Source: Takakia lepidozioides
Taxonomy: Eukaryota > Plantae > Bryophyta
Reading direction: 5' to 3'
DNA length: 64,000 bases
NCBI GenBank assembly: GCA_030704615.1
Contig: CM060733.1
Span: forward strand, 248,001-312,000
Positions within the stretch are counted from its first letter, which is position 1. Every line of letters begins with the position of its first letter. Position numbers and translations under genes: made by a program. This document shows positions 22,802 through 52,500 of this stretch, in pieces. Below the pieces are notes generated by a model. That model saw only the letters and a program-made list of their open reading frames with translations, was not told the DNA's origin and did not search any database.

Positions 22802-22849
22802 GTGAGTTGCAATGCCTTGCTGTCTTTACCCTGTAATTGGCTATATCTG

Positions 22850-24665: not shown

Positions 24666-26236
24666 TCAAACCCCTTAGAACATCAAACCTCCTTAGAATC
24701 TTATACAACACCAAACCCCCTTTCTCAAGGTATAACAAAGCAAGCTCGAAAGGTGAATAGGAGGCAATGGCATCTTGCATATGCAGAATGATTGATTGCA
24801 CAAAATTGGCCTATATATTAAGTAGACAGATACATGTGCAGATACAAAGAATGGATTGGGTAAATAGCATTTACAAACCTATCGCAAAAATAGTAACCAA
24901 GGGCTTCAAACAATATTTTTCCCAATGTCGTCTTCGCACTACCCATTATGCCTGCAACAGCAACCAAGAAATCTATAAGTCACCATTGTGCACACACAGC
25001 AGCCAAACAACATAAACAGCTGTCTTGTTCTAAAAAACATTTGATGTTCACAGCAAATAATATTTGACAATGTGGTCAGTAGGGGCACTCATTCGAATAA
25101 AACGACACTACAGCTGCCTGTACAGGAAAGGATGTAAGTTCAAGCTCACTCACTTGGAGTTTCCACCTCTATACCATGAAGTTGATGAACAGTCCCATTG
25201 CCAGGCGGCTGCCACAGTACACCGGTAAATGTCAGTCCCCAGAACACCCCATTGCCTTCGATCAATCAGGAGTGAACGTCAGAAAATAATCCTACTTGCA
25301 GTCTCCACTTCCATTTGGTCTCTCTCTCAGGTAGACAATATCTGTCAGGGAGTCAGATGCACATTTGCACATCTACACGGAAATCAAGAAACAAATCTGC
25401 ATCATACTCCAGTCTGGTGGAAACTGTTCTGACACAATCTCTCCCATTAGTACAACTCTAGTCTCTACCTCCTATTATATAGTATTGCTGCAGCACAATG
25501 ATAAATAAAACTGCTTGCTGGCATTTAACTTTGGAGAGACCAATGTGATTCCTAGTGGACCAGCTTACCACACTTGCTTTGATTACATAAGTAAACCATC
25601 CTAAAGAAACATGTCGTTCAGGGGAATTACCAACTCATCTACGGCCGCCGCACTATCCTGAATGTAGAGCTCACTGGCCTTGACGTTTCGGAGAGAGACT
25701 CCAACCCTGGAATCAGGTCTTGCTGCTTCCCACCTACACGCACCTTGCCATGAAACACTTCCAAAGCGATCCGATGACGATGACACGGATTGCCAAGTTC
25801 CCTTTTCAATAAGTGATGACGACAATGGCAATCTCTGCCGTACAAAGCCCCCCTTCACCGGAAGGTAGGGGGTTGGAGGCATGCGTGACTACGGCCAACT
25901 GCTGCTCATGGCCTGCTAGTACTACAATTGGACCTGCCAAAGATGAAACAAATCTCTGCAAGGCCATTCAAGTTTTATTAGGCAATGAGACTTTGTGACA
26001 CCACTTCCACTTTCAAACAAATTCACATGGGGAAAGGGCTAAGGCAAGCTACGGATGTACTGGGGCCTATCTTGCTGGGCAAGTCAGAATTGCAGTCAGA
26101 ATTGCAAACGTGTTGCTGCAAAAACAGGAATTTTGAGGTGAGGCAGCCAATCTTCTTGCAGACCGAAAGCCGTAAAGTATAGAAAAGGACATAGATGGAC
26201 AGGATTGCTCAGTCGTTAGAATGGGAAATGTCATAC

Positions 26237-26350
26237 CTGCAAGCCAGCTTCAGAGCAAACTCGAAGAAAATGAAGACCAGTAGCTGCTGCAGCCCAACCA
26301 TTGCCAATTACCACTGCCTTGACCTCCTCTTCAATAGGAAACTGCATCGA
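26237..26350 (-). pseudogene. N-terminal Rossmann-fold exon fragment of an FAD-dependent oxidoreductase
   Basis: EEEVKAVVIGNGWAAAATGLH...EAGLQ followed by a GTATGA donor. It resembles a degenerate VVVGSGWAGL dinucleotide-binding motif and abuts the right inverted repeat. Confidence 0.45.
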
Positions 26351-26900
26351 CCGCTGCACGACACTCAAATTTCGTAAATCACCGAGTTTTTTCAAGACCA
26401 GAGTTTGCTTGGTGTACCCTCTCGATCTGGGAAGAGCTCCTCTGCCGCAGAGGAGCAGCGGCAAAACTCCCGCCTTGAGTTGCGAACCCCTAAACCGGGT
26501 GGTTCCCTTCTTTGTTCCCCAATTTTCGAAGAATATTAAAACGTATTATGTACATGTGGCCTAAGGTCTTAGGGCCTGAGGTCAAGTGGCCTAGGGTCTT
26601 AGGGCCTGAGATCATGTGCCCTAGGATGAGGATCCTAGGGCTTGAGGTCCCTCGGTATGAGGCTTGAGGTCCCACGGTCACATGGCTTGAAGTTTTTCTA
26701 TGACTGCCCATCCCTTATATTTTTTCAGATAAGATATACGTATTTTGAAAATATATAGAAAATACATTATACATCTTGAGGTTGAGCCTCAAGCTCAAAG
26801 CCTACAGTATCTTTACCTATGTTTCTAGAATATTCCACTCAAGTCCCAAGGCCTGCGGGCCCAACCATGATAGCTGTTTTGGAATTCCATAGCCGGCAAC

Positions 26901-29139: not shown

Positions 29140-29566
29140 TAGTTGAGAAGCAAAAGTGAATGACTCAGATGAGCTCCACGGCGGAAAAGAGCAAATCACG
29201 ACAAAGAAGTTCGTTGACATTTTGGATTTCCAGGCAATAGTCCTTGGAAATCCTACTTTCGCGGAAAGGCTCCACATAAGCGCCACGTCACATTGCCTTC
29301 TCATTGTCGTTCCTCCGTGTGGTAGATGAGGGTGTCAGTTTACAAGCCATCAACCAATCAGTAGCTTGCGTTTGTTTCCACTGCCACTCATGTGGTAGCG
29401 CCATACGTTTTATAATAACTTAGATGATTAACATTTTGACTCTGAGAGAGAATGGCATCTCACACTCATATATCCCTCCATATCTCATTGTAATTTTATT
29501 GCTCCAATTAAAAGCTCACTAAGCCATAATGTTAGGGTAGTAGTTGCGGAGCAGTTAGCTACCTAG

Positions 29567-30292
29567 TGTCGCACACCTCAATTCGGTAAACTCCCCTTCA
29601 AGTCATAGTTACTCGCTTTGATGCGCGCGCCTGACTCCCAACCTGGCCGCCGGGCCAACTTGGAGTTTCGGCTGCTCACCGGGACATAACGGTCCCCTTC
29701 CGCTTCCCTCTAAACCCTCCACCTATTTGGGACTAGGAGAATTCCCTTTGGTAGATGGCAGTCCGGAACAGCTCCCCACTCTTTGGTCGCTTTCCGGCTC
29801 GCTCGCTTACTCACTAGTTTTTGGTCACCAACGGGCTTGCACCGTTCTCGGGGTTACTACTCCCTATATATACTTCTGTAGCTGTCCGCGGGGGTTTCAT
29901 AACCAGCCATGCCATTTTATGGCGAACCACCACGAAAACCCTCGACTCCCGGTGGTGAGTCGCGGTGAGTCTTGGCCCACTCACCGCGGCCCCAATGGAC
30001 CGTGATGAGTCCCAAGACTCCCCACGACTCCCACCTCGAGGTCTCCACCCCATGGTGAGTCCTATGCCACCCCCCACTAAGTCCCACTAAGCTACCACCA
30101 CCCCTTGTGGAGCCACCTCCACCGCAACCCGGTGTGCGGGGCTCCACCTAGTGAGCGCCTCCGCCTCCTTGGGTGCCTTGGGCACTTAAGGGTGCTTCAG
30201 CCCCCCATACCTATCGCTGCCGCTGCCCCCACCACAGGGGCAGCCCCTCATGTGTCCCGACCCCCCTGCTCTCAAGGCAAAGGGCCGCGACA
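29567..30292 (-). repeat. 3' LTR (726 bp)
   Basis: TGTCGCACAC...GGCCGCGACA. By eye it is identical to the other LTR except for one extra C in a C-run near 30070. Confidence 0.95.
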
Positions 30293-31196
30293 CACACCCT
30301 ACCAACAGGGAGTCGATGTCCTCATCGACTTGTCCATTTTGTAGAAACGAACATCCAAGTTGTGGCGTCCCACATCAAGGAGTTTGTTTCCGTACCATGG
30401 CGTCCCATGGCAAAGAACCAAACCCCACACTTGACTCCACTCTCCACTAGCTAGTTCGGCCGACTTCCTCCAAGTCCCGGCCAAGGGTGGAGCCTCTCCA
30501 GCTCCTCCCAGTGCACTCTTCTTGGCCTACTTCAAGGCCAAGGAACGATCCTCCCCGAGGATCGAATCGCCTTACTGCAACAACATTGCTTGCGATCGCT
30601 CATGATGCCGCTTTTGGCATCACCTTGAGCAAGGGTTCACCTGGAACCCTCTTTGACTAGGAAGATAACCTTGAACCAACCGTGCGCCCCAATCACTACA
30701 ATTGGGTCCGCCTTGGAATGCTGGCCTGAGGTACGGGAACACGCCGAAGCCGCACTACGACTTCGTCCCGAGGCTACACGATTATAGTACGTGAACGGAA
30801 GCACGTAGCTTCCGCGTTAGCCCGCACTACAAGGCAACCCCCTCGGTAGCGCAGTTATAGTACGCGCACGCGCCAGGTGCGCACTAGCACTTGAACTCCC
30901 AAATAAGGCGCAAGTTTCCTTGCCCCTTGGATGGGAGTCACCCGATTTCGGCACTGCGCAAACACACGATTAACCCAATTTACCTCTCCCACTTTTGTAA
31001 GCTAGCATGCATTCTACACACCAGCCAACCACACCATGCATCGCCATTCCAAACACAATAGGACGCACAATATTTGGAACCCATTTCCTTTATCACAAAT
31101 TTTTGTACAATACAAGTTTTGCAATCGGATTCCTGAGCTAGCTAAACCGGGCTAAGCATGCATTTCCTCCCCCACGCTCCAAGGTTGATGTCCCCA

Positions 31197-34100
31197 TCAA
31201 CGCTTCTTCCGCTTTTGAGGTCGCCCTTCGAACGCTGCAACTGCCTCGGATGCGTTTCCCATTTCTGAGGCACGCACCCAAGATGCCTCCACAAGATGAT
31301 AGCCCTTCCATTTGACGAGATACTCCGTTTCTCGGTTCTTGAACCTCCTCGACTTAAGTATTGCCTCCACCTCGTACTCGGGTTCATTTTCATGATCCAA
31401 CAACATAGGTGGCGGACGCAACACTTGCTGCCGATTCGGACGTGCTTCATCTTTGAAGTAAGGCTTCAAAAGGGAGACATGGAATACTGGGTGCACCTTG
31501 CTGTTTGCTGGCAGCTCCAATTCATACACATCCTCATTCATAACCCTCCGAATGCGAAAGGGACCCGCATACGGAGGTACGAACTTCGGACTCATTTCCG
31601 GAGGTAGTCGAAAATTCTTGATGTTCAACCAGACCTCTGTGCCTGCCTCAAACTTCACTTCCCTCCGCTTCCGATTCGCCTGCCTTTCATACCGTTTCCT
31701 AGCTTTGGCAATGTTGTACTTTGCGAGCTTCAACAAACGCTCGCGTTCTTCCAGTACCGCCGCTACTGCCGGTTCCTCAACGTCCTGGGCGGCCCAACTT
31801 GTCGGCACCAGAGGTGCTTTTCCATAGACCAACACAAAAGGGGAAACTCCCGTCGCGGAGTGTTCTGTGTTATTATAACAGAACTCTGCCGCGTCTAAGT
31901 GTTCCATCCAGTCTGATTGGTCTGCCGACACGTAATTCCGCAAGAATTGCTTCACTACGGAATTCACTATTTCCGTTTGGCCGTCCGTCGTAGGTCGGAA
32001 GGCGGTGCTCATCTTCAGCCTCGTCCCCATCTTCTTCCAAAGTGCTCTCCAGAATTTACTCGTAAACTTTGGATCGCGGTCCGAGACAATATCCTTCGGG
32101 ACTCCATGATGCTTTAAGACGTGGGCGAAGTAAAGTCGCCCTGTCTCCTGCGCAGTCGCCGTCTCCTTGGTGGGGATGAAATGGGCCATTTTACTGAACC
32201 TATCTACCACCACCATGATTGCATCGAATCCTTTTGACAGCGGCATAGCAGTCATGAAATCCATCGAGACGCTTTCCCAAGTCCCCTCTGGAATCGGCAA
32301 GGGTTGTAACAGCCCCGCTTGCTTTTTATACTCGCTCCGGTTTTGTTGGCATGTGGTGCATGTCTTAACATACTCCTCTGCCTCCTCCCTCAGTTTGGGC
32401 CAGAAATACTCTTTCTTCAAGAGTGCCGCAGTGCGCTTGGCTCCACCGTGGCCCGCAAGCGGGCTATCATGGCATTCTCTCAAGAGACTATCCCTGATCC
32501 CTCCCTTTGGCACATAGAGACGTTTTTGCTTATACCGGAGCAGTCCGTTTTGCAAGTGGAACTGCGATTTAACCCCCATTCTTAAGTTCTGCATCACGCA
32601 CTTTGCCAGCTCATCCTTCCGGCAAGCCTTCCGGATCTTCCTTTGGAGCGCCGTCTCGCCCTTGTACACCAACAAGAGCTGCTGCTTTCTACTTAAAGCA
32701 TCGGCCACCACATTGTCCCGTCCCGGTTTGTACTGGATATCCACGTCGAACACTGCCAAAGTATCTTGCCACCTAAGTTGTTTTGGGGACAACTTGGGCT
32801 GCGTGGCAAAATACTTCACCGTGACATTGTCCGTGAACACCTTCACTGGGTTGGAACCAACATAGTGGCGCCAGAGTTCAAGGCAATGTACCACCGCCTT
32901 CATCTCTTTTTCGTGCGTCGGCCACCGTCGCTCCACTTCATTCAGTTTCTTACTTTCGTAAGCCACTGGACGTCCATCTTGCATAAGTACACCCCCAATT
33001 GCGAAGTCCGATGCATCTGTATGAATCTCAAACGGACGATCGAACTCCGGGATTTTTAAGACTGGAGCTTCCGTCATCCGCTGCTTCAATTCAGCAAAAG
33101 CTTGGCCACAAAATGTGTTCCATACCCAGACTTTGGATTTACACAGAAGGTCCGACAGCGGCCCCGCGATCTTGGCGAAATTTCTCACATACTTCCGGTA
33201 ATAGGAGGCGAGCCTAGGAAGGATCGCACTCCCGGGACCGAAGTCGGAGGCTCCCAGTCCAAGATCGCCCTCACCTTTCTGTCATCCATTTTGATCCCAT
33301 CCTGTGTAATCACGTGCCCCAAGAACTCCACTTTTGTGACCCCGAATTCGCACTTTGAAGCTTTGGCATACAGCTTCCCTTCTCGCAATTTTTGGAACAC
33401 CCTTTTGAGGTGCTCCAGGTGCTCCTCCTTTGTTTTCGAGTACACCAAGATGTCGTCGATGTACACGATCACAAAGTCATCCAACCACTCCTGGAAAAGG
33501 CTGTTCATCAGCGTGCTAAATGTCGCTGGTGCATTGGTGAGCCCAAAAGGCATCACCAAGAACTCATATGAACCATACCTTGTCCTGCACGCGGTCTTCT
33601 CCTCATCTCCTTCCGCCACCCGAATTTGGTGATAGCCGGAGCGCAAGTCGATCCGGCTGAAATACTTCGCTCCTGCCAACCGATCGAAAAGGTCGTCGAT
33701 CCTTGGCAAAGGGTACCGGTTTTTGATAGTCACCTTATTCAGAGCCCTGTAATCGACACACATCCGCAGCGTCCCATCCTTCTTGTCTGCAAATAGCACC
33801 GGGGCTCCGTAAGGTGACTTACTCGGCCGGATGTACCCCTTTGACATTAGATCTTTGAGCTGAGTCTTCAGCTCGACCAACTCTTTGTGGCTCAACCGGT
33901 AGGGCGCCTTGGCAGGCGGTTCCGTTCCCGGTATCACCTCAATTTTGTGGTCAACTCCTCTTCGCGGTGGCAAGCCGCTTGGTAAATCCTCCGGCATCAC
34001 ATCCTGGTATTTCTCCAAAATCCCCTTGATCCAATCTGGGCTCGGCTCCCCATCGCCTTCTCCTTTCACTTCTCTAATGTAAAGCAAAAACTGGGACTCG

Positions 34101-35759
34101 TGTGTCTCCTCCACGGCCCACTCCTTTGCTGATAGAAGGTTTATTCGCCCTCCCACGGATTTGGGCGTTTCCGACACTCGTAAAACCTCGCCACCATTCC
34201 CACATGGCAGCGTGACTACTCTCTTGCGGCCATCTATGACCGCTCCGGATTTGCTCAAAAAGGTCATTCCCAAAATGAGATCCACTCCATCGATCTCGCA
34301 GATAGTGAAGTTCTCACGTCCCTCCCAACTCCCCAGTTGAAGAGGAACATCAAACGCCAACCTTGTCGCCAACTGAGGTTCTCCTTTGGCAGAGCGCACC
34401 TCAATAGAGGCCCCCACGTCACTTGTCGGGAGTCCCAACTTTCGCGCCGCCGCCGGCGTCATGAAGGAGTGCGACGCTCCTGTGTCCACCAACAACGACA
34501 CATTAGTTCCGGATATTATCCCCTCCACGAACAATAACTGACTCCCTTTTCGTAAGGCGCCAGTTTCCTGATACAACTCACAAGAAAATTTGCCTACCTT
34601 GCAAGTCCTGGCGACCACCGCTTCCACCAAGCGACTGATGGTATCTTCCGACAGCTCCGTGGTCGCCCGAGTCATGTTCAATTGCCGGGGCTTCGTGCAC
34701 TTCTTGGCCATGTGCCCGGGCTCCCCGCAATTGAAACACACTCCATCAAAGGTCGCCTTCTGTCCGCCATAAGTCGCTCCACCCGCTTTTCCTTTCGAAG
34801 CACCGGGTGCCGCCTTGACGTGTGAAGGACCTCCCTTCGATTTCCACGTGCCATTTTCGCCGCGTGGCCTATCCCACTTCTTTTCCGGTCGGGAGGAGTC
34901 ACCTTCCCGCCGGGTCTTCTTGTGGTTCAGCTCCGTACGGCCTTGTCTCTCACCCCTAGGGACATCCGAGAAACATTCAGCTCTCTCAATTGCCTCGTTC
35001 AAAGTCTTGGGTGGCTTCTCCTCCAACTTCCGCCTAGCCCATGGGGCCAGTCCCGCCACAAAGTTGAAGACCATTTCTGGTTCTGCCATGTCCGCGACTT
35101 CGAGCAACAGCACATTGAAAGCCTGGACATACCCCCGAATGTCATCTGTTTGCTTCAAATTCCTCATCTTGTCCCGGGCAAGCCAGGATGCGTTGAGGGG
35201 CACAAACTGTCTCTTCATCAATTCCTTGAACTCACTCCAGTTCAAGGTTTCCGGGCTTGGGCCTCGGTCGTGAAGGCGTTTCTGCCACCATTGTTGAGCA
35301 TAGCCCCTCAAATAGGTGGGAGCCACTTCCACCTGATCCTCGTCACTCAACTTGGCCGCCCGGAAGTACTGCTCTAGCTCCAGGAGCCAGGTGTTGAGTG
35401 CCTTCCGGTTTCGAACGCCCTCGAAGGTGCCGGGTTCCTTAGGCTTCACCTTAAACTTTGCCTTGGTGGGAGTGGCATTAGCCGCCTTCAACACGTCTTT
35501 CAACGTCCCGCCAAACTGCGCCAACAACCCTTCCCAAAAGGCTGCCGGCATGGGAGGCATCTCTTGGTTTGTCGGAGCTCTCAAAGATTCCTCGGGCTCC
35601 GACTCCTCGGATTCCTCCCGCTCCTGAGCGGCCTCGTTTTCGGAAACATTAATCGCTTCCTCAAACGGCCGCCTCGGTGACACGTCGCCCCCATCGGGCT
35701 CACCGGGATCATCATCTTTTGGGCCGTTCCGCTTTCGCTTCGGCTTGCCCGACCCCATG
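31197..35759 (-). CDS. Gag-Pol polyprotein, split by a 1-nt frameshift at ~33212
   Basis: [14 protein letters not shown] zinc knuckle, [10 protein letters not shown] protease, [17 protein letters not shown] RNase H, HHCC/DDE integrase with a GPF motif, and the chromodomain EYEVEAIL...YLVKWKGY...[15 protein letters not shown] restores to [17 protein letters not shown] with one added base. Confidence 0.93.
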
Positions 35760-35799
35760 ATGAGGCCAATCCCAAGGACGATCGCGTACTGAACTCTAA

Positions 35800-35811
35800 G
35801 CTCTGATACCA
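35800..35811 (-). promoter_or_regulatory. Primer-binding site complementary to tRNA-iMet
   Basis: The minus strand reads TGGTATCAGAGC 2 nt inside the 5' LTR boundary. Confidence 0.92.
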
Positions 35812-35813
35812 AG

Positions 35814-36538
35814 TGTCGCACACCTCAATTCGGTAAACTCCCCTTCAAGTCATAGTTACTCGCTTTGATGCGCGCGCCTGACTCCCAACCTGGCCGCCGG
35901 GCCAACTTGGAGTTTCGGCTGCTCACCGGGACATAACGGTCCCCTTCCGCTTCCCTCTAAACCCTCCACCTATTTGGGACTAGGAGAATTCCCTTTGGTA
36001 GATGGCAGTCCGGAACAGCTCCCCACTCTTTGGTCGCTTTCCGGCTCGCTCGCTTACTCACTAGTTTTTGGTCACCAACGGGCTTGCACCGTTCTCGGGG
36101 TTACTACTCCCTATATATACTTCTGTAGCTGTCCGCGGGGGTTTCATAACCAGCCATGCCATTTTATGGCGAACCACCACGAAAACCCTCGACTCCCGGT
36201 GGTGAGTCGCGGTGAGTCTTGGCCCACTCACCGCGGCCCCAATGGACCGTGATGAGTCCCAAGACTCCCCACGACTCCCACCTCGAGGTCTCCACCCCAT
36301 GGTGAGTCCTATGCCACCCCCACTAAGTCCCACTAAGCTACCACCACCCCTTGTGGAGCCACCTCCACCGCAACCCGGTGTGCGGGGCTCCACCTAGTGA
36401 GCGCCTCCGCCTCCTTGGGTGCCTTGGGCACTTAAGGGTGCTTCAGCCCCCCATACCTATCGCTGCCGCTGCCCCCACCACAGGGGCAGCCCCTCATGTG
36501 TCCCGACCCCCCTGCTCTCAAGGCAAAGGGCCGCGACA
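35814..36538 (-). repeat. 5' LTR (725 bp)
   Basis: Direct repeat of 29567-30292 at offset 6247, followed by the CCTAG TSD. Confidence 0.95.
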
Positions 36539-37269
36539 CCTAGTGGCTAGCTATTTGTTATTGGAAAGGAATCTCATGCAAAGAGGGCTCTCATTTTAAG
36601 ATAATAGCGTCTTCAATGCACCTACTATGGCCCTGCCAGTACGGCCCATGGGGTAAGCTCATAAGCCCACCGCCCATTCACCGGGTCCATCGGATTTTGA
36701 AATTTTTCTAAGTCCTTGTTCTTCTACGGCGACGGATCTTCTAACGGACTGGGCAGACCCTCCAGCGGACTGACTCCAACATTCGAGCAGACTTGCAGAC
36801 CCTCTAGCAAACGCATACAAAATATATATTTAATAACATACATTACTGCAAGAGTATCACCTAACAAGAATTGGATACCAAAATCTCATGCTTATTATTC
36901 ATTGTTCTTAACCACCAAACTATCCGCTGCTTTCTACAAATCTTCGAAATAACTAATATTTTATGTGTATGTTTTATATATTTTGTGGCCCAACAGACTG
37001 ACTTGCCGGGGAGACCCAACACATTGAATCCGACGGGTCTTCGCGACCCCCTCTGCTACATGCGGGCCCTGCCGCAAACACACGCGCGCATTGAAGACGC
37101 TAGTATCTTTCCATGAGAAGAGCAAAGAGTGGGTATTGAAGCTTTTGATCTTGTGTGTTGAAGTATGACATATTTGAAAGTGTTTCAAAATCCCTTTTAT
37201 AGCTTTGAATATTTCTTGCGTAAGCACATTTTCATTTCATCATAGCATATTCAATGGAATATTCAGAAA

Positions 37270-39527
37270 CACTAGAAGAGAAACCGGCTTTTTCCATGGC
37301 TCTGCCATCTCACACCTGGCACATTCCATGGCTTTTATCACGGGTCTGTACACTGAGCCAAGGTGTGGGTCTAAATATGCCCTAACTGTGGGGTGTCTCA
37401 CATGTGGTCCACACCCCAGGCAAGAACGGTGTGAAAACAGCCATGAGCGTGGCAGGGGTCGGCTTAGTTTACATGGCATATTACACACCTGTGTGAAATG
37501 GGAACATACAATTATTTCCACTGATTGTGGTGTATGGGGAGTTTGAGAATGATGCCCTTGGAAAATGATTATGAACTTCATGTTCATGTTTAGAAATCTG
37601 CACGATGGTACTAGCAAGTGAAGAATACACCCCATTTTCAATCTCTACATTATGAAGTCTATAATGCCCTTGGTGAAATGAGCATGGGGATCGCATTCAA
37701 AGGTGGCCCCGTTCCGTTGCAACCTATGACACAACTAGGACAAATAGGCATAGGCATGATTGTCACTTTTTGCCACAAATCACTTGCATCATCCTTACGT
37801 TAAACTCATTGTTTATGTGACATGCTTGGACTTTGTCATCTCACACATCAAAGAAAAAACCAGAATATTTCGAAAAAATCCTAACCTAAAAATCCTAACC
37901 TAAATTTACTAACAAGTGTTCAAACCAGCCCAATGGTAATATATTTTATTACCATTATCAAATGTTTGTCTACGTGGTGTTTTGGTTTTCTAGACAAGTC
38001 TGATAGCAGGACTTTAGCCTCTGACCTAGAATGAATCAAAGTGCAAAAGGTTAAAAAGTCAAAAAGTTCCTAATAAGGTTGCCCATTAGGTTTAAAAAAG
38101 TTAAAAAGTTGCTAATAAGGTTGCCCACTAGGATAATCGTGAACACAGAGGAGGGCTGGGACTTGGCGTTTTTTTTTTGTTCCCTGTGCCACACCATGTA
38201 GCCGAGGGATGGAACGCGATGATCGCAGGATATGCAGGGGCGTGGGATGGAGGCGTTGAGCAAATGATGCACCTTCTTCAACCCATTTCACTCTGTTTTC
38301 CCCTCTTATCAGAATCGCCCTAAATTTTCATGTTTTAAGAATTCTGCAAGTTAGCTGGTTGAATGAACCTTTGATAGTTTGGAGTGACTTTGACATGATA
38401 CTGCCAAAGTGACAATATGAAAGTATCCAGAAATAGGTAACAGAGAGGAGAAGCTGTGGAATGAATACTTTTCTGACCCTAGTCAGGTAAATGCCTTTGG
38501 ATTACAGAGTGGTAGATGCAATTGAGAATATGAATTGGTGTGATAAGTTGAGTTGGGTGTTTGCTGGAACAAATCTAGGCTACCATTGTCAGCTGCTAAC
38601 AGCAATGCAAGGATGTATGCATGATCTGTGCAGGGGCATGGATAGCTGAAGGAGCAGGGATAGAGTGTCATCCAAGAGGGCCAGATTTCAAGCTCCAGAT
38701 TATTTATGATTCCCTGTGGAGGGTTAGCTACAAGAAACCTGCATGGGTAGATGGTACATAGTTTGGAGTGATTTTGACATGATACTGCCAAAGTGACAAT
38801 AGGAAAGTATCCAAAAACATGTAACAAAGATGAGGAGAAGTTGTGGAATGAATGCTTTTCTGACCGCAGTCAAGGGTAGGACAACCGAGGGAAAAAGGTG
38901 AATGTCTATTAGATTACAGAGAGTAGGAGACGCAACTCAGCATAGACGCAAACTCTCCTTCCCTACAAAGGGTATGTTTTGGTATCTGAGGGAATAAATA
39001 TAATTTCTAAAAACATAATTTCAATATTTTGTTATTTAATAATGTTCTCATCTAGGCCACTGCCCATTTTTCCTATAATAATAATAATAAATTAAATCCA
39101 TTAATATTCAAACTTAATATTGGAAAGCAAATAATAATTAATTAATGTGTACCACCACACAGGAACGAACACGTGTTGCATAGTGACTTGTCAAAGGTGT
39201 GAAATATGACACGTGTCGCATAGTGGCTTGTTCAAGGTGTGAAATCCGCCGTGAAACATGCCACACTGGCCTTTTTCACACTCTGCCATGTCAGCTATGC
39301 CATCGGCTATGTCAGCGGCCATGTCACCATGCACCCCGTGAAAAAAGCCCACCCATGGAAAAAGCCTCCCGTGGACTTTTCCACAGGGCCACCCGAGAGC
39401 CAGGCCGTCCACGGGGTGTCCGAAAGCACTAGTCGTTCCTTACACCCACGGCAGGTGTGGACTGCGGCTGGTTCCACAGCAAAAAGTGTGGAAAAAGCCG
39501 TGGAAAAAACCGGTTTCTCTTCTAGTG
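37270..39527. mobile_element. Non-autonomous CACTA (En/Spm) element
   Basis: TIRs CACTAGAAGAGAAACCGG / CCGGTTTCTCTTCTAGTG (18/18), subterminal CCACGG/CCGTGG and GCCATGTCA repeats at 39240-39500, and 3-bp flanks AAA/AGA (1 mismatch). Confidence 0.88.
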
Positions 39528-40459: not shown

Positions 40460-43400
40460 CCAATCCAAGCAAAAGAGTTACATCTTAGCCATGGGAGAAT
40501 GGTCTCCCCTGCCAGGAGGGAGGGTTGAAGTCTCTGCCAGAGCGAGCCCTATTGGCACCCAGAACTGTAGTAAGAGACTCTGGGGTGCTAGTCCAGAGGT
40601 GGGAGATTTGGGAGATGCCTCTAGTCTCCCAAGAGGCCCGTCTTTTGGCCTGGCACTTCTCCTGAGGGGTGGGCATGGCTGAGTTAAGGAAGAGGTGCTG
40701 CCTCTGAACCTCATGAAAAGACGAAGGTTCTTGCTTCCTGAGAAAGGGTCTGAATTTACCCAAGGCAGACCAAATTGATTTCCAGAGCAAAGAGCCCAGG
40801 GATTTGTGATTAAATCCCTGAGTGATCCAGCGGATAGAGGGGGCCTACCAAAGGGAATTTCCACTAGGCCCAAATTGGTGGAGGATCCTTTAAATTTGGA
40901 AAAGTAAAGGGGGACCGATATCATAGCCTCACAGAGATAGATCCCCTGGCTCCTCATCTTGGTTGCAATCCCCATTTCACCTGGACCAACAATAGAGACC
41001 TTCAAAACCTTTCTATGGCTCGCCTTGACAGATTCTACTTTTCTATGTCCATTGCTAACAACACTTCCCTTCTGCCTCAGCATCCCATAGCTCTGGGCTT
41101 CGACCATGCCTTAATCGAGGCCTCTCTCTCCTTCCCAAATGCCCATCGCTGTGGGAGAGGCATCTACAAGCTCAACATCTCTCTCCTTCAAAATGTCTCT
41201 TTCGTCCTCAATCTGTAGGAGCACTGGTCCTCGTCTGGGAACCATCTGCAATGCCCCATTTTGAAATTCCAATTCAAACTGGCGGCCTCTTGCAAACTAA
41301 GTCAAACCCTAATTAAAGAGATCGCGGTTTCCCGTAAGAAAAAAGTCTTGGCCTTGCAAAAATGTTTGCGGATCTGTCAATCAAAGATAGAGGCTAGATC
41401 CTGTGATGACCATACCTTCCAAACCTATCTCGAGGCTCCTGCTAACCTCGGCCTCTTTCATGAGCAAAATGAACTAAGGATGAAAATGCAAGTTGGGATT
41501 AACTGGTCTGCCAGCTTCAAAGAGCCATGCAATCTATCCATGAGTTGTACGTTGATCAAGCAGGCAATAAATCATCTAATCCCAGAGAGCTATGTGCCAT
41601 GGCCTTTGGCCACTTCAGCTCCCTCTTCCAGGTAGACCAGCTGGGCCCAGATTATTCGACCCTGCTGGATTCTTGCCTCCGTTCAACCCCGAATAGACTG
41701 TCGGCTGAGGGAGGTATGGCCTTGTCTGGGGTCTTCACACCCATGGAATTGGAAGATGCCCTTCATCAGATGAGTAATGGGAAGACCCCAGGTTTAGATG
41801 GTATGCCAGTTGAGTACTTCAAGGCTATGTTTGCGAAATGGCCAATGAGATCAAACGGCAGGGTGCAATGCCTGGACAGATGTCTCAGGGGGTTATTACC
41901 CTGCTCCACAAGAAAGGAGACAAAGCTGACATTGGAAACTATAGACCCATTACTCTGCTCAATGTCGCTTACGAAATCATTGCCAAGGCTCTAGCCCTCT
42001 GCCTCCAATCCCTTCTCCCCTCTCTCATCCGAACGGGCCAGGCTGGTTTTATCAAAGGTAGATACTTTCTCGACAACGTCTTGTTAGCTCAGAAGGCCAA
42101 CTCGTATGCCCTGGCAACTAACCAAGCATTGGCACTATGGCTCTTGGATTTTGAGAAGGCGTTCAACAAAGTAGGGTGGGATTTCCTAATTGTAGTTCTT
42201 AAAAAAACAGGCTTGCCCCACGACTTTTGCCACTGGGTTAAACATCCTTCTTCGGGGCTCTACCAGTAGGGTCATCATCAATGGCCACCTCTCAAAGCCT
42301 TTTCAACTGCAAAGATCGGTAAGGCAAGGATGCCCTCTGGCCCCCTTCCTCTTCCTCTTTGTAGCAGACACCTTGGGTTACATGCTAGATGACAACTTCA
42401 TGGTAAGGGGCCTTCAGCTCCGGAATCCAAAAACTCAACTCTGGCTACAAATCAAGGACTCTACGTTTGTGGATGACACCTTCCCACTACTTCAGGCGGA
42501 ACCTTCCACTCTTACAGCTGCTGAGAGCACTCTTAAGAAGTTTTGTAGAGTCTCCGGCTTCCGGGTTAACTGGAGAAAGACCAAAGCCTTGCTAATAGAG
42601 GACCCATCTATGTCTTCTATTGGGATCAACCCCAACTGGGAAGACCAAGGTATGGCCTGGCTTAAAGCAGGAGAACCTACCACACTGTTGGGTCACATCT
42701 TCGGCCTGGACCTCACCGAGGAGCATTGAATGGGGCCCATTCTAGCCAGGCTCAAGAAGGAGCTAGCGTTCTGGGGCTCTAAGTTCTTCTCCATCACCGG
42801 AAGAGCTCTGGCTGCCAACCAAGTTCTGCTTGTTGGGATCTGGTATTTTGCCTCCACTTGGAGTCCGGGCTCGAAGTTCATGAAGGAGATGAAGAGATGT
42901 ATCAGAAACTTTATCTGGGGAGCCCATTCAGACCTTCAAAACAAACGCCCACAAGTTTCGTGGTATCAGATATGCTTCCCTAGAAAATCAGGTGGGCTAG
43001 GACTGCTAGATCCAGAAACGCAGATTCGGGCCCTACTAGGCAAGTGGCTGCCAAGACTGTTGGGGCCCGAAGGAGGTTGGTGGAAATTGCTTGTAATAGG
43101 AACTATTGCGTTGTGCTCCCCTCTTCAAGGAGCGAATTTGGATGAGAGACAGCCAGGAGGCTTCTTCATCAACATGGAGGGAAGAAGTTGCAGACCCTCT
43201 CATGTCCATGTCAGACTCTACCATGTTGAAATCACCAGCTAGGAGCCAGTTACTAATGGACTGTTCAGCGGCCATCCGGGCATTGATCAAGTCCCAGAGG
43301 GCCAAACGATCAGGCATTGAATTAGGGGCATAGATGTTGAGCAAACCAAGGGGTTCCGAGTCGGATGGGAGGTGGAGAGAGCAGAATTGCACTCTCCCCA

Positions 43401-45242
43401 GCTCCCAAACTTCTTCTTTAACTAGGAATTGCAAGAGGGAGGGGGAGAGAAGAATCGTTGTGCCTCCCTTTGAGCCCTCGTAGGAGGGTTTCCAGAGAGC
43501 TGAAGCAAGAGGCCAGAGGTTGTCAGGAAGGTTTTGAATTTTGTGGGGGTTGAGCTTGTGTTCATGCAGGAAGACAATCGCTTCTGAGGGGATAAGGGGT
43601 GCTAGCCAAGACCTTAGTTTGATTTTCTTGAGGGCGGTCTGGTCAGAGCCGATTCCCCTTATATTCCAAGAAGAAATGCTAACCTGCATCATAAGGGTGA
43701 TTCAGGCTGAGCGGGGAGGACTCAAATGATGGCCTGTTGGAGGGAAAGTGGAATTTAGTTCTCTTGTCGGAGGGCAACAGTGAGGGAAGCCAACAATGGT
43801 CATTGGGGGCTTCATCAACCAAACTAGAGAGCTCAATCGTCATTAGGAGAGTGGCTTTGTTGTTTAGGTAAAAATTGTCATCACCCGGAAGAGGCTGGAA
43901 TCTAGAACATGGCATCCATTTGTTGTGAACTACTTTGGGTCTCCCCGAGAGTTGCATGAAGAAGTCAGAAAGGAGAATGAGTTTCAGGGAAGTGGGTGTA
44001 TTGTAGGGTAGAGGGCCAGAGGCTGTGCCAAAGTACATGGAGAAGTCCCCATCTGAGAGAGAGAAGGAAATAGAGGGAAGGACCTTCCAGGTGCGGGGGA
44101 CAGGGTATCTAGATTTGAGACAAAGAATATTTCCCCTGTTAGGATTAGTGGGAGAGGGATGGAAAATAAGAAAGGGGATAGTGATGGTGGTCTGGCTTAC
44201 CGTGAAATTGAGAGAGACAGGTCTGACAGGGGATCCGACTGGTGTTGGCGTTGGGAGCTGGGGAGATTGAACTCCATTGGGCTGCATTGAGTTGGCCGGT
44301 GTTGGTGTTGGGAATTGGGGCGACTCCACGCCGTCGGGGATCGTTGAAATAGCTGCCTCCCCATCCAGTTGAGGGCCGACCGGTGGTTGCCGGGAGTGGG
44401 GCTGTAATTCTTGGAGGTCTTCAGAACTGTCAGAGTCAGTCCCCGCATGATCAATAATAGGCCAGGGTCTGCCTAAAGTGCGGTGAGAGTCGATCCATTC
44501 GTTATGCTCATGGACTTCTGATTCCAGCAGAGCATGCATAATAGTGAAGGCATTGTGCAAGGTGTCCCTGGATCTGTTCAGGAACAAATTGGTGGTGGGA
44601 GGCTGATTGAAAGGGGCTGGTTGCATCCATGAGCCTTCGGGGATAGAGCCGTCGATGAGTAGATCCTCCATGTCCATGAGAGCTAGATTCTGAGTGGTGG
44701 GGGAGAGGTTTATCCCCAGATGGGATTACGTTCGACATAAGACCCCCAGGTAATTTGCACATTGGGTGAGAAAGAGAGATGAGGATGATTGGAGAGCAGA
44801 TAGGGATTGATCTTGGTCTTGAGGGCTGGGATGGGGCTGCCGTCCCTTGGGATCTGATCCATGAAGAGAGAGATATCGCGATTAGAAATCCAAAGGGATT
44901 CAATGTTTGCACCATTGTTGGATGTGAGAAGGAAAGAGGGGGAGGGGGCTCTACGATAGATGAGCGGGGTAAGGCAGATAGATTTTGGATGAGAGGGGGA
45001 GATCACCTGCGAACAACCCCGGAGGGCCATCGTAGGGAAAGACTGAAATTTTGTACAGACCCTAGCCACTATAGGATTGTATGCAATGAGAGAGGAAACA
45101 GACAGAGGAAGGGAGGGCCTAGAGGGTGGCGGGGAAATTCTAGACAGATCTCTGGGCCTTGAAGTGATCGAGGGCTGCCAACCTTGAGTAGACCCCGCAT
45201 TCAGAGAAGAGTCACCATTGTTGACGACAATCAAAGAGTAGG
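40460..45242 (-). mobile_element. Degenerate L1-type LINE (ORF1 C-part, APE endonuclease, RT) with internal inversion of 40937-43125
   Basis: Minus strand: SWNIRG...LNIYAPN...AGDFN (43692-43126). Plus strand: RLDRFY...DH, KTPGLDG, YRPITLLN, LDFEKAF, RQGCPLAP, FVDD, GGLGL. Minus strand post-RT: LWKSIWSA (40790). Many stops and frameshifts. Confidence 0.92.
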
Positions 45243-47284
45243 TGTCGCGCACCTCACTTCGTTAAGCTCCCCTTCAAGTCATAGTTACTCGCTTTGACGC
45301 GCGCGCCTAACTCCCATCCTGGCCGCCGGGCCAACTCGGAGCTTCGGCTGATCACCGGTAGCAGTCCGGAATAGCTCCCCACTCCTTGGTCGCTTTTCGG
45401 CTCTCGCTTACTCACTAGTTTTTGGTCACCAACGGGCTTGCACCGTTCTCGGGGGTACTACTCCCTATACATACTTCTATGACTGTCCGTGGGGGTTTCA
45501 CAAACAACCCTGCCATTTTATGGCGAACCACCACGAAGACCCTCGACTCCCGGTGATGAGTCGCGGTGAGTCTTGGCCTACCCACCACGGCCCCATTAGA
45601 CCGTGATGAGTCCCAAGACTCCCCACGACTCCCACCACAAGGTCTCCGCCCCATGGTGAGTCCTATGCCACCCCCACTAAGTCCCAGTCCCACTAAGCTA
45701 CCACCATCCCTTGTGGAGCCACCCCCACCGCAACCCGCTGTGCGGGGCTCCACTTAGTGAGCGCATCCGCCTCCTTGAGTGCCTTGGGCACTTAAGGGTG
45801 CTTCAGCCCCCCGTACCTATCGCTGCCACCGCCCCCACCACAGGGGCAACCCCTTTGCGTCCTGACCCCCTGTCCTCAAGGCAAATGGTCACGACACACA
45901 CCCCTACCAACAAGGAGTCGATGTCCTCATCAACTTGTCCATTTTGTAGAAACGAACATCCAAGTTGTGGCGTCCCACATTAAGGAGTTTGTTTCCGTAC
46001 CATGGCGTCCCATGACAAAGAACCAAACCCCCACTTGACTCTACTCTCTACTAGCTAGTTCGGCCGACTTCCTCCAAGTCCCGGCCAAGGGTGGAGCCTC
46101 TCAAGCTCCACCCAGTGCACTCTTCTTGGCCTACTTCAAGGCCAAGGAACGATCCTCCTCGAGGATCGAATCGCCTTACTGCAACAACATTGCTTGCGAC
46201 CGCTCATGATGCCGCTTTTTGGCATCACCTTGAGCAAGGGTTCACCTTGAACCCTTTTTTACTAGGAAGATAACCTCGAACCAACTGTGCGGCCCAATCA
46301 CTGCAATTGGGTCCGCCTTGGAATGCTGGCCTGAGGTACGGGAACACGCCGAAGCCGCACTACGACTTCGTCCCGAGGTTACACGATTATAGTACGTGAA
46401 CGGAAGCACGTAGCTTCCGCGTTAGCCCGCACTACAAGGCCTGGGGGGTGCACTTTTTATAAAATGTGCGTATCACGTGCGTTCGCCGACTAATAAAAAA
46501 ACCCCCTGTTTACGGGTCCTTGGATAATTTATATCCCCTCTGTACATACTTTTTGAGGATTATAAAACCCTCTCCTGTACATATACAAAAATTTATAATT
46601 TTTAAAAAGTACCCCCTTCTATATGTATATTCTCATTTTCAATCATTAAAAAATACCCTCAAATATGTATATGTATGTTTTTACATTATATCAAGTTTAT
46701 TCATTTAGAAACAGAATAAAATCCAATAAATTAATTAAAAAAAATATCTATTTGCCCTTGATAAGATTGTCAAAGACTTTCCGCTCATTGTAATTGTGTT
46801 TTCCTCCAACACCACATATCTTCCATAATACTAATAAGTTGAGCCAGCTTATAGAGTAGTTTTTAAGCTACCTACCACGTTGATTAAATACTAAATAGTA
46901 CCATGGTTTCAGTTCTGAATCAGAATGTATTGTTCAAGACATCTTATCTCCAAGAGTCCGGGGTTTTCAGATGTATAATGTTATCTTTGGATTAACCACC
47001 AAATGATACAATGTATACTCTTATCTATGGCTGGTGAACAGAACCATGCCAGTAGATTATGTATACTTTAATGATAAAGAGCACTAAGAGTATGTGTTGC
47101 TCTGTCAATAAAACTCAAGGCTGGTACAGATGTAAGTTGCTTCGTGAAGTGAAAGCCTAAGTAATAAAGGGCATTGGGAATTGCAGAGTTCAACATGGAA
47201 TTTTAGGGCCAATTCTGATAAGAGGGAAGAACAGGGTGAAATGTATCCCTTAGTGATTTTCCTTCCCTAGATAATTTGGCATTC

Positions 47285-48632
47285 TCAGAATGAAACAAAG
47301 TACAACAATTCTAGCTTTTGACAATGTCACCATGGACCTCTTCCCCCTTTTCCAGGTCTGCCCCACACTCCCTTTGCATCCTCTACGCACCCGCATTTGG
47401 CAGACCTGTCCACCAAGGCACTATTCAGAATGACATAAGGTACAATTCCAGCTTTTGACAATGTCACCGTGGACCTCTTCCCCCTTTTCCAGGTCTGCCC
47501 CACACTCCCTTTGCATCCTCTATGCACCCGCATTTGGCAGACCTGTCCACCAGGGCACTATTCAGAATGACATAAGGTACAATTCCAGCTTTTGACAATG
47601 TCACCATGGACCTCTTCCCCCTTTTCCAGGTCTCCCCCACACTCCCTTTGCATCCTCTACGCACCCGCATTTGGCAGACCTATCCACCAGGGCACTATTC
47701 AGGATGACATAAGGTACAATTCCAGCTTTTGACAATGTCACCGTGGACCTCTTCCCCCTTTTCCAGGTCTGCTCCACACTCCCTTTGCATCCTCTACGCA
47801 CCCGCATTTGGCAGACATGTCCACCAGGGCACTTTTCAGATGACATAAGGTACAATTCCAGCTTTTGACAATGTCACCATGGACCTCTTCCCCATTTTCC
47901 AGGTCTTCCCCCCACTCCCTTGGCATCCTCTATGCACCCGCATTTGACAGACCTGTCCACCAGGGCACTCTTCAGAATGACATAAGGTACAATTCCAGCT
48001 TTTGATAATGTCACCATGGACCTCAGCTTCCCCCTTTCCAGGTTTGCCCCACACTCCCTTTGCATCCTCTACGCACCCGCATTTGGCAGCCCTGTCCACC
48101 AGGGCACTATTCAGATGACATAAGGTACAATTCCAGCTTTTGACAATGTCACCATGGCTCTTCCCCATTTTCCAGGTCTGCCCAACACTCCCTTTGCATC
48201 CTCTACGCACCCGCATTTGGCAGACGTGTCCACCATGGCACTATTCAGAATGATATAAGGTACAATTCTAGCTTTTGACAGTGTCACCATGGACCTCTTC
48301 CCCCTTTTCTAGGTCTGCCCCACACTCCATTTGCATCCTCTACGCACCCGCATTTGGCAGACCTGTCCACCAGGGCACTGTTCAGATGACATAAGGTACA
48401 ATTCCAGCTTTTGACAATGTCACCATGGACCTCTTCCCCCTTTTCCAGGTTTGCCCCACACTCCCTTTGCATCCTCTATGCACCCGCATTTGGCAGACCT
48501 GTCCACCAGGGGGCACTATTCAGAATGACATAAGGTACATTAATTTCAGCTTTTGACAATGTCACCATGCACCTCTTCCCCCTTTTCCATGTCTGCCCAA
48601 CAGTACTCCATTTGCATGGACTCTATGCACCA
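47285..48632 (-). repeat. Tandem array of ~10 x 136-139-bp units derived from PLS-class PPR coding sequence
   Basis: The anchor GTACAATTCCAGCTTTTGACAATGTCACC recurs at ~47300, 47440, 47577, 47714, 47850, 47987, 48124, 48260, 48396 and 48535. A unit translates (with frameshift) as LEKGEEVHGDIVK-AGIVPYVILNSALVDRSAKCGCVEDAKGVW. Confidence 0.95.
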
Positions 48633-48734
48633 ACTTTCTGAATCTTGAGGCTGAGCCAAAGCTCAGCCCCTAAATCACCCTCTCTGCACTAGACTTAATT
48701 CAAACTCAGGGGGGGAACCCGACCTTTGCTCCAT

Positions 48735-49235
48735 CACTATGCTCCATGACACCACATTGCATACACAGCCCCTTAGCTGCCCATCACTCCCTTTGCATCT
48801 TACATATACCCACATTTGACATACATGTCCGCCAGGGCAGCTTTCATAATGACATCTGATACAATCACTACAGCTTTGATGATGCCACCGTGGACCTCTT
48901 CTCCAATCTCCGGGGCTGCCAAGCTTGTACATGTGCTCAGAGGTCTCCAAAGCCTCCCTCCGCTGCCCTTGTAGCGCTTATAGCATGCCACCATCACGCT
49001 CTATGACACCACATTCCATTCAGTCATACTGTCCAACACCCCCTTTAATGCATCCTTCATGCACCCGCATTTGGCATACATGTCCACCACGGCACTGGTC
49101 AAATTGACATCTGATACAATCCCAGCTTTGATAATGCCACCATGGACCTCTTCCTCATTTTCCAGGGCTGCCAGGATTGCACACGCATTGCAAACACAAA
49201 CGAATGTGACTGGCCTGGGCTGGAAGAATACCAAA
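48735..49235 (-). pseudogene. PLS-class PPR gene fragment (two degenerate L-S-P motif sets)
   Basis: QPRPVTFVCVCNACAILAALENEEEVHGGIIKAGIVSDVNLTSAVVDMYAKCGCMKDA...NVVS and GEEVHGGIIKA..SDVIMKAALADMYVKCG...NVVSW. Confidence 0.9.
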
Positions 49236-49279
49236 TCATGGTACTAACAGGAGGCAAGAGCCCGCATTTCCAGGATGGA

Positions 49280-49597
49280 CAAACTTCTTCACATCGTACC
49301 TTAAGAAAAGGCCACACCTTGCGATTGCAGTTGTTCCACCATCGTGAAGGATCTTTAAAAAACTTTTGTTAGCTCTGTTCCGTGCTGCGAATTCAGGGGC
49401 GCCGAGTGTGATGAGAGGGAAAAACAGGCTGAAATAGGTCAAAGAAGAAGGTGCCCTCACCACATTGTCCTTGACCTTGTGTTGTGACCCATGGAGGATT
49501 TGACCTCCCATCAACCCCAAAATGATCTCTTCTGTGTGCTACTGATGGTTGTAGTCAGGTAATGTCGGATTGGTCTTTGAGAACCACCACGGTGCAG
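49280..49597 (-). pseudogene. Exon fragments with OSB-type PDF motifs (organellar ssDNA-binding protein-like)
   Basis: Frameshifted KTNPTLPDYNH...SFW-VDGRSNPPWVT (49580-49485) and KVFKDPSRWWNNCNRK (49370-49315), compared with the PDF consensus P..WWDNR..K.NP..PDFKHK....LW.D....P.WV. AG/GT borders are present. Confidence 0.6.
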
Positions 49598-52500
49598 CTG
49601 AGCAGGCAGAGATTGAAACACGGCCTGCTAAGACCAAGCTGACCCTCCCAAGAACCTTGTAAACATCAGGAAGAATACCATGCCCTGCGGTCGACCACCC
49701 ACCCACGAACGCGGGAGAGGAGGGGAGAGGAGAGGAGATGAGGGAAAAGAGAGAGCAAAAAAATGATACTGCTGTTTGATCCCGCCGTGCATCGCGGCCT
49801 AAGCGATGTCCTTACCATGACTACCCCTTACAATTCAACAATCCCCACCTGTAACATTATATTTAACGTGTTTTAAACCCCCCTATTTATGTATAAAGTT
49901 GTACATGGGGGGTTTAAAATACCCCCTCCTGTGCACGCACGTGGCTGGTACATATTGGCTGGAGTGCACCCCCAGGCTACAAGGCAACCCCCTCGGTAGC
50001 GCAGTTATAGTATGCGCACGCGCCAGGTGCGCACTAGCACGTGAACTCCCAAAGAAGGTGCAAGTTTCCTTGCCCCTTGGATGGAAGTCACCCGATTTTG
50101 GCACTACGCAAACACACGATTAATCCAATTTACCTCTCCCACTTTTGTAAGCTAGCATGCATTCTACACACTAGCCAACCATACCATGCATCACCATTCC
50201 AAACAAAATAGGAGGCACAACATTTGGAAACCATTTCATTTATAACAAAATTTGTACAACACAAGTTTTTTGCAATCAAATTCATGAGCTAGCTAAGCCG
50301 GGCTAAGCATGCATTTCCTTCCCCACGATCCAAGGTTGATGTCCCCATCAACGCTTCCGCTTTTGAGGTTGCCCTTTGAAAGCTGCAACCGCCTTAGATG
50401 CGTTTCCCATTTCTGAGGCACGCACCCAAGATGCCTCCACATGATGATAGCCCTTCCATTTTCACAAGATACTCCGTTTCTCGATTCTTGAACCTCCTCG
50501 ACTTAAGCACTGCCTTTACCTCGTACTCGGGTTCATTTTCATGATCCAACAACACAGGTGGCGGACGCAACACTTGATGCCGATTCGGACGCGCTTCATC
50601 TTTGAAGTAAGGCTTCAAAAAAGAGACGTGGAATACCGGATACACCTTGCTGTTTGCCGGCAGCTCTAATTTATACACATCCTCATTCATAACCTTCCGG
50701 ATGCAAAATGGTTCCGCATACGGATGTACAAACTTCGGACTCACTTCCGGAGGAAGTCGGAAATTCTTGATGGTCAACCAGACCTCCGTGCCTGCCTCAA
50801 ACTTAACTTCTCTCCGCTTCCGATTCGCCTGCCGTTCATATCGTTTCCTAGCTTTGGCAATGTTGTACTTTGCAAGCTTCAACAAACGCTCGCGTTCTTC
50901 CAGCACCGCTGCTGCTGCCAGTTCCTCAACGTCTTGGGCGGCCCAACTTGTCAGCACCAGAGGTGTTTTTCCTTAGAAAAGGGAAACTCCCCGTTACGGA
51001 GTGTTTTGTGTTATTATAAGAGAACTCTGCCGCGTCCAAGTGCTCCACCCAGTCCGATTGGTCTGCCGCCACGTAATTTCGCAAGATCTGCTTCACCACG
51101 GAATTCACCCTTTCCGTTTGGCCGTCCGTCGTAGGTCGGAGGGCGGTGCTCATCTTGAGCCTCGTCCCCATTTTCTTCCAGAGTGCCCTCCAAAATTTAC
51201 TTGTAAACTTTGGATTGCGGTCCGAGACAATATCCTTCGAGAGTCCATGATGCTTGAAGACATGGGCGAAGTAAAGTCACACCGTCTCCCGTGCCGTTGC
51301 CGTCTCCTTGGTGGGAATGAAATGGCCCATTTTACTGAACCTATCCACCACCACCATGATTACATCGAATCCTTTTGACAGCGGCATAGCAGTCATGAAA
51401 TCCATCGAGACACTTTCCCAAGACCCCTCTGGAATCGGCAAGGGTTGTAACAACCCCGCTTGCTTTTTGTACTCGCTCCGGTTTTGTTGGCATGTAGTGC
51501 ATGTCTTGACATACTTCTCGGCCTCCTCCCTCAGTTTGGGCCAGAAATACTCTTTCTTCAAGAGTGCCGCGGTGTGCTTGGCTCCGCCGTGGCTCGTAAG
51601 CGGGCCATAGTGACAATCTCTCAATAGACTATCTCTGATCCCTCCCTTCGGCACGTAGAGACACTTTTGCTTGTACCGAAGCAGTCCGTTTTGCAAGTGA
51701 AACTGCGATTTAACCCCCATCCTTAAGTCTCGCATCACGGACTTCGCCATCTCATCCTTCGGGTAAGCCTTCCGGATCTTTCTTTGGAGCGCCGTCTCGC
51801 CCCTGTACACCAACATGAGCTGGTGCTTTCTACTTAAAGCATCGGCCACCACATTGCCCCGTCCTGGTTTGTATTGGATATCCACGTCGAACACCGCCAA
51901 AGTATCTTGCTATCTAAGTTGTTTTGGGGAGTACTTAGGCTGTGTGGCAAAATACTTCACCGTGACATTGTCATCATACTCGCCCTGATCTAAGATGTCC
52001 CTCTTTGCCCGGTCGCATGCTTAGGAAGTTTTAGATTCAGCCATCATTCCATGCTACGAAAATGCTCCGACCCTAAGAGGAAGTACATACATAGACACAG
52101 GTCAATCAAGCCCAACACATGTGTGAAGGCATGGATAATCTGGGCATTATAACATACATACTTGCATCCTGTTTTTCCTAGCTGCAAGTTCGACACGCCA
52201 ACTTCTGTGATTGGGTTCCCTGCTGCTTCCTTTTGCTTCGCTTCCAGAGTACTAAGGGTATCAATGAAGTATGTAAACGATACCATAGCAATCCATGTCC
52301 TTGTTGCGTCATTTTGAGGTGGATTGGGCTTGCTGATTGGATGGAGGAGCCAAAGCAGGCTTAGATTGTTTAGCCCAGTAGTCTGATAGGGCTGGTGAAA
52401 ATATGAAGCTCCCTGACATTACACCGACCCTGCACACCGGACAGTCGAACCAGGTCAAGGCTTGCAACCATGAGGCACAAAACTTATCAACGCAATTGAA

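Follow-up and report, generated by a model that had tools for sequence, protein, structure and literature searches.

A probable hAT-like Pack-type transposon carrying decayed PDF-motif and pentatricopeptide repeat gene fragments in Takakia lepidozioides

How did a run of co-oriented gene pieces, all resembling organellar nucleic-acid-binding proteins, come to lie inside a retrotransposon of the moss Takakia lepidozioides, and does it still do anything there? The pieces occupy positions 46440–49976 of a 64,000-nucleotide (nt) stretch of contig CM060733.1 (assembly GCA_030704615.1, positions 248,001 to 312,000), the whole of which we call the window. A first-pass annotation had described them as a mobile, transcript-like cassette of PDF motifs and pentatricopeptide repeats (PPRs), akin to Pack-hAT elements, that might either seed small interfering RNAs (siRNAs) against PPR genes or spread PPR modules. 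We analysed the boundaries, the insertion site and the contents of this 3,537-bp element (46% GC). The best explanation as a whole, in which we have good confidence, is that it is a non-autonomous Pack-type cut-and-paste transposon with terminal inverted repeats (TIRs), that it is hAT-like, and that its cargo comes from a single type of gene.

Results

An empty site in a sister retrotransposon documents the insertion

The element begins with a 15-nt TIR (CCTGGGGGGTGCACT; 46440–46454, plus strand) and ends with one of 14 nt (49963–49976, minus strand; reverse complement CCTGGGGGTGCACT), the difference being a single-G indel within a G run. Immediately outside both ends stands a perfect octamer, CTACAAGG (46432–46439 on the left and 49977–49984 on the right), which we read as an 8-bp target site duplication (TSD). 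Window-wide, and with up to two mismatches allowed, the 14-mer of the TIR matches the two element ends only.

The host of the element is a degenerate copy of a Ty3/chromovirus retrotransposon, and a sister of this host is present in the same window. The sister (about 29560–36539, minus strand) is intact, one open reading frame (ORF) encoding gag, protease and reverse transcriptase and the next ORF RNase H, integrase and chromodomain. Its long terminal repeats (LTRs) of 733 bp are identical in all compared blocks, and its insertion is therefore very young. The left flank of the element (46217–46440) is 96% identical to 30612–30835 of the sister and the right flank (49977–50253) is 94% identical to 30827–31103. 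In a three-way alignment the sister holds one CTACAAGG (about 30827–30834), its flanks joined with nothing in between. Because the sister keeps this paralogous empty site, insertion of the element, with duplication of 8 bp of its target, is shown and not merely inferred. The insertion point falls in the non-coding stretch of the host retrotransposon that separates pol from its 3′ LTR. The TIRs, the CTACAAGG pair and the empty site thus bear out the earlier description of a mobile Pack-type element with short TIRs and an 8-bp TSD.

Immediately ahead of the LTR of the degenerate host copy, minus-strand ORFs at 43039–45252 include an endonuclease/exonuclease/phosphatase domain (218 amino acids, E = 6e-8). 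They are probably a fragment of a long interspersed nuclear element.

The ends are related beyond the TIRs and enclose no transposase

The two ends resemble one another over ~75 nt, well past the TIRs, with a common CACGTGCGT box. The right subterminal region (49771–49962, minus strand) carries G-run/TGTACA repeats together with this box, which is also found at the left end. On the left lies an AT-rich tail (46455–47160, minus strand; 32% GC), which is without a Pfam-matching ORF and whose outer ~250 bp contain the C-run..TGTAYA subterminal repeats. A composite motif (a C run, then TGTAYA within 9 nt) has four copies in the outermost 250 nt on the left and two on the right, whereas the remaining window averages 0.07 per 250 nt, with no such stretch holding more than one; the pattern was picked after viewing the sequence, and the contrast with the rest of the window is descriptive. 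The tail had been likened to a 3′ untranslated region; its base composition is as described, but nothing marks it as a 3′ untranslated region and it holds the subterminal repeats.

Pfam scans of 14 longer ORF pieces inside or overlapping the element matched no transposase family, which is why we regard it as non-autonomous. In tblastn comparisons the interior is filled by PPR/PDF homology only.

The cargo is a decayed series of exon-like blocks

All parts of the cargo lie on the minus strand in the same orientation. From the right end inwards, a CT-rich leader (49679–49770) ends in an ATG followed by GT. Three intron-like GT..AG segments follow, of 81 nt (49598–49678), 76 nt (49385–49460) and 80 nt (49220–49299), each with a pyrimidine tract ahead of its AG, and these part three exon-like blocks. 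In PDF exon X (49461–49597), WW..NP..PDY and ..VDGRSNPPWV.. lie in different frames and are separated by a TAG stop. PDF exon Y (49300–49384) contains the first half of a PDF motif (..FFKDPSRWWNN..) downstream of an in-frame TAA. Beyond the third segment, PLS-PPR fragment 1 (49001–49219) comprises L and S motifs and the start of a P1 motif, with a stop at its end, and PLS-PPR fragment 2 (about 48776–48997) has an internal deletion and stops. Further along, at 47181–47243, an intron-like sequence of ~65 bp recurs that is also present in a cargo intron (49390–49454) and in the cargo of a separate, CACTA-ended element (38269–38349). With its stops and frameshifts the reading frame of the exons is not intact.

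A 77-residue ORF piece (49004–49234, minus strand) matches a synthetic PLS PPR-DYW chain in a sequence search of the PDB with E = 1.3e-51 and three full-length repeat matches, and it has 7,484 matches in a representative library of 1.84 billion proteins. Aligned to the synthetic PLS PPR-DYW and PLS9-PPR chains, the fragments present the L-S-P succession with its ..VH..I.K.G.. and ..DMYAKCG.. signatures. These alignments indicate that the PPR fragments are real and clearly PLS-type. Pfam returned no PPR match for the ORF pieces, the fragments being too short or decayed for those models, and within the element there is no E or DYW homology.

A leader ending in ATG|GT and a set of spliceable exons had been proposed for this region. 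The leader and the three GT..AG segments stand, but ATG|GT does not qualify as a working first splice, since the PDF motif falls out of frame once the next exon is attached there. The 76-nt segment, spliced as written, also shifts the PDF frame. The exons were searched separately, by reference to known proteins.

A tandem array probably grew from sequence that was already non-coding

Between the PPR fragments and the tail lies an array of 137-bp units (47305–48602, minus strand; 9.5 copies, 92% matches), made up of nine full units and a truncated tenth that are 88–98% alike. A unit spans the latter half of an L motif plus roughly two-thirds of an S motif from a PLS-PPR protein, and is 84% and 70% alike to the two upstream PPR fragments. 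All units have in common an extra A, a +1 frameshift relative to both upstream fragments, and stops are present in each; the 137-bp period also rotates the reading frame. Because the frameshift and the stops are common to the units, the array was amplified from sequence that was already non-coding. Substitutions within the array comprise 22 transitions and 14 transversions, with 3 at CpG, and are too few to speak on methylation.

One type of gene has the architecture of the cargo

Do the PDF and PPR pieces require different source genes? Among the 150 best PPR matches, two have a WW..PDF pattern near the N terminus: KAJ7517631.1 (P0001) and KAJ7570437.1 (P0020), two sequences from the lycophyte Diphasiastrum complanatum that are annotated as hypothetical proteins. 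In each, one or two PDF-type motifs at the N terminus precede a long PLS-PPR array and an E motif. Pfam, run on these two matches, recovers PPR repeats and the E motif and gives no match over the PDF motifs; querying the ESM Atlas with the PDF part of P0020 yielded nothing usable. Word-index protein searches with the 77-residue PPR piece, a 55-residue PDF piece and the PDF region of P0020 returned nothing new, as expected from the length window of that search.

The N terminus of P0020 aligns colinearly to 49551–49330 with 34.7 bits (E = 1.6e-6, the search space being small), and the best of 200 shuffled queries reached 23.9 bits; that of P0001 reaches 28.9 bits, against a shuffle maximum of 26.6. 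The alignment runs, on the same strand, from the latter half of one PDF motif through a linker into the first half of the next, such that the WW..NP..PDY..NPPWV and ..FFKDPSRWW.. stretches of the cargo align to the PDF-bearing N termini of the two proteins. The only long gap in the P0020 alignment (24 residues) falls exactly over the 76-nt GT..AG segment, as expected of an intron retained in genomic DNA. The PDF-like motifs of the cargo appear real on these alignments, and they may be the PDF motif of OSB proteins, an identity suggested by the published description together with the OSB consensus. As described, the OSB motif spans about 50 amino acids and has a Pro-Asp-Phe signature (PMC6963530). 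A literature search joining 'PDF motif' with pentatricopeptide found nothing except that one general review.

Since P0001 and P0020 have PDF motifs and then PLS-PPRs in the same order as the cargo, one type of gene explains the cargo and its pieces need not stem from different genes. The simplest reading is that the cargo would derive from the 5′ region of a single PDF-PLS-PPR gene type and has since decayed and been rearranged. Whether a single parental gene could have both motifs had been put forward as something to check, and such genes exist. The co-oriented PDF pieces, PLS-PPR pieces and PPR-derived array of the first-pass annotation are likewise upheld, by the PDB match, the shuffle-tested alignment and the 84% and 70% likeness of the array unit.

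The intron-like segments have been retained, and for this reason the cargo is a copy of genomic DNA and not of mRNA. A retrocopy is ruled out by the kept introns and the absence of a poly(A) tail, and to call the cassette transcript-like is misleading.

Alternative explanations for the ends and the cargo

The hAT assignment comes only from the 8-bp TSD and the short TIRs, which suggest the superfamily and do not prove it. Both features fit, with CTACAAGG on both sides of the element and once at the empty site, and with TIRs of 15 and 14 nt against the about 10–25 nt of hAT elements. The terminal consensus of hAT elements is 5′-YARNG. Several points weigh against the explanation that we favour, and among them is that both termini begin CCTGG, outside this consensus; of the earlier label Pack-hAT-like, the Pack-type part holds and the hAT part is only suggested. 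An ambiguous C also permits a 9-bp reading of the TSD, and the element is a single copy in the 64-kb window searched. As to the cargo, 'one donor gene' is inferred from architecture and not from a matching locus: the full-library search gave no close match for a donor, the best single stretch being about 50% identical. Moreover, only the first half of PDF motif 2 is present in the cargo and the tail holds a second intron-like copy, and the cargo is therefore either rearranged or assembled from more than one capture. No hAT domain was found in the 22 non-overlapping ORFs of at least 150 amino acids scanned across the window.

Two other origins have to be set against a hAT-like element with genic cargo. 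That the element is a short-TIR Mutator-like element (MULE), of the Pack-MULE kind and with a 9-bp TSD, draws on the C that follows the TSD at the empty site, which equals the first base of the element and lets CTACAAGGC be read as a 9-bp duplication. Termini off the YARNG consensus, relatedness of the ends over ~75 nt rather than 15 only and the presence of a long-TIR element in the same window (about 21.4–26.7 kb) are consistent with it. Yet a 9-bp TSD needs asymmetric termini (CTGGGG.. and CCTGGG..), whereas with 8 bp both begin CCTGGGGG; the perfect TIR is 14–15 nt, with weaker similarity to ~75 nt, whereas plant MULE TIRs are typically much longer; and the long-TIR element near 21 kb is without these termini. 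We consider a MULE unlikely. The cargo, for its part, might have been acquired at second hand, not from a gene but from a different transposon, for example a Pack-CACTA element that already had PDF and PPR pieces and arrays. A CACTA-ended element 8 kb away does have PDF exons, along with a 65-bp intron-like piece that is related to the copy in the tail (82% identity), but no CACTA terminus occurs inside the element under study and this 65-bp piece is its sole match elsewhere in the window, so that second-hand capture seems quite unlikely. We hence retain a hAT-like element with cargo from one PDF-PLS-PPR gene type as the preferred explanation.

No coding capacity and little sign of a siRNA source

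The element encodes nothing and is most likely functionless, spreading dead PPR/PDF sequence. As a possible RNA, it contains no inverted duplication of the cargo able to fold into double-stranded RNA (dsRNA), the array being direct, and Rfam assigns it to no family, the only match being a chance-level one to abiF.

These properties bear on the proposal that the element works as a non-coding locus similar to the TAS loci of flowering plants, with the captured leader driving a PPR-repeat RNA from which secondary siRNAs would act on PPR genes. Flowering-plant TAS loci feed phased siRNAs (phasiRNAs) directed at PPR genes, in networks that act on P-class PPR genes. By analogy, a non-coding locus with leader, exons and array all co-oriented could in principle give siRNAs against PPR genes, and Takakia is reported to have about 2,000 of them (PMC13386178). 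The array, however, has no inverted partner for dsRNA, Rfam has no match, and no microRNA trigger site can be named here, whereas flowering-plant TAS loci have defined ones. The known PPR phasiRNA networks, moreover, are those of seed plants, act on P-class genes and are not known to be transposon cargo, whereas the cargo here is PLS-type; and a retrotransposon, which surrounds the element, is by default silenced. We judge a TAS-like role very improbable. siRNA seeding by the element is thus unsupported, and the alternative that it spreads PPR modules holds only in the sense of dead fragments.

Other elements with PDF exons or long TIRs in the window

The CACTA-ended element spans 2.26 kb (37270–39527). 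Its inverted termini of 32 nt start CACTAGAAGAG and are 94% complementary, and the flanking triplets AAA and AGA make its 3-bp TSD imperfect. Its cargo consists of intron-split PDF exons (EKLWNEYFSDPSQ|gt ... PRGPDFK..LW..PAWV, then an EKLWNECFSD exon) with no PPR part. Just inside the right end (39150–39300) are direct repeats with a roughly 35-nt unit (cacgtgt.gcatagtg.cttgt.caaggtgtgaaat), which look like subterminal transposase-binding repeats.

At 21458–26627, long imperfect TIR arms of 45–113 nt, 74–98% complementary, stand about 5 kb apart. The shape is MULE-like, and the termini are unrelated to those of 46440–49976.

Discussion

Comparison with known gene-capturing elements

The element is closest in form to the Pack-hAT elements of maize and rice, all of which have an 8-nt TSD (PMC8903248, Gisby and Catoni 2022). 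Like them it is non-autonomous, with TIRs and an 8-nt TSD, and carries host-gene fragments with introns and no transposase. It differs in its host, a seed-free plant, and in its cargo, the front end of a PDF-PLS-PPR gene plus an internal array. Its termini are unrelated to the Ac/Bg core TIRs and fall off YARNG, and it is present as one copy in the window, whereas packFinder demands clusters. With the Ds-type hAT elements of the maize Ac/Ds system (PMC3260210) it has in common short TIRs, an 8-bp TSD, short subterminal repeats at both ends and a heterogeneous interior, but its subterminal motif, C-run..TGTAYA, differs from theirs. Rice Pack-MULEs (PMC5861414) also capture gene fragments, are mostly non-coding and often take 5′ gene ends; their TIRs are long and their TSDs 9–10 bp, in contrast to a 14–15-nt TIR and a TSD that is most simply 8 bp. 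The CACTA-ended element at 37270–39527 resembles the present one in having PDF exons as cargo and differs in its CACTA termini and 3-bp TSD, as against an 8-bp TSD and CCTGGGGG termini. The present element is hence a further family with the habit of carrying PDF cargo.

A possible history of the locus

The following course of events would account for the locus. The leader, the short introns, the PDF exons and the first PPR motifs would have been copied into the element from genomic DNA, probably via template switching in gap repair, as proposed for other Pack elements. A 137-bp piece of a PPR fragment that was already frameshifted would then have been amplified in tandem by slippage or unequal exchange, an order suggested by the frameshift common to all units. 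A transposase encoded elsewhere would recognize the 14–15-nt TIRs together with the subterminal C-run/TGTAYA repeats, and would have driven insertion into the 3′ internal non-coding region of the older chromovirus copy, the step for which the empty site gives direct evidence.

Significance for PPR dispersal

Could such capture be more than incidental? One can imagine that unrelated DNA-transposon families (the 8-bp-TSD family and CACTA) repeatedly capture 5′ PDF-PLS-PPR regions and expand PPR arrays. Such arrays, if transcribed from captured leaders, could be a dispersed TAS-like source of siRNAs that dampens the ~2,000-member PPR family of this early-diverging moss; capture could also shuffle PPR modules at the DNA level, distinct from the published retroposition model. 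We regard this as a long shot. By itself the copy is an ordinary gene-fragment-carrying element.

Its interest lies in what it displays. Both ends, the TSD and the empty site are all found in one window, which makes the locus a clean example from a seed-free plant. The cargo also documents, indirectly, a PDF-PPR gene architecture that was found in no paper searched. According to a kingdom-wide survey of 2026, retroposition is the main cause of PPR expansion in early land plants, with weaker retroposition signals in Takakia (PMC13386178). Capture by DNA transposons is a separate, DNA-level route by which PPR sequence is dispersed, here as dead fragments only: at this locus a DNA transposon moves intron-containing pieces of a gene of the organellar RNA-editing type.

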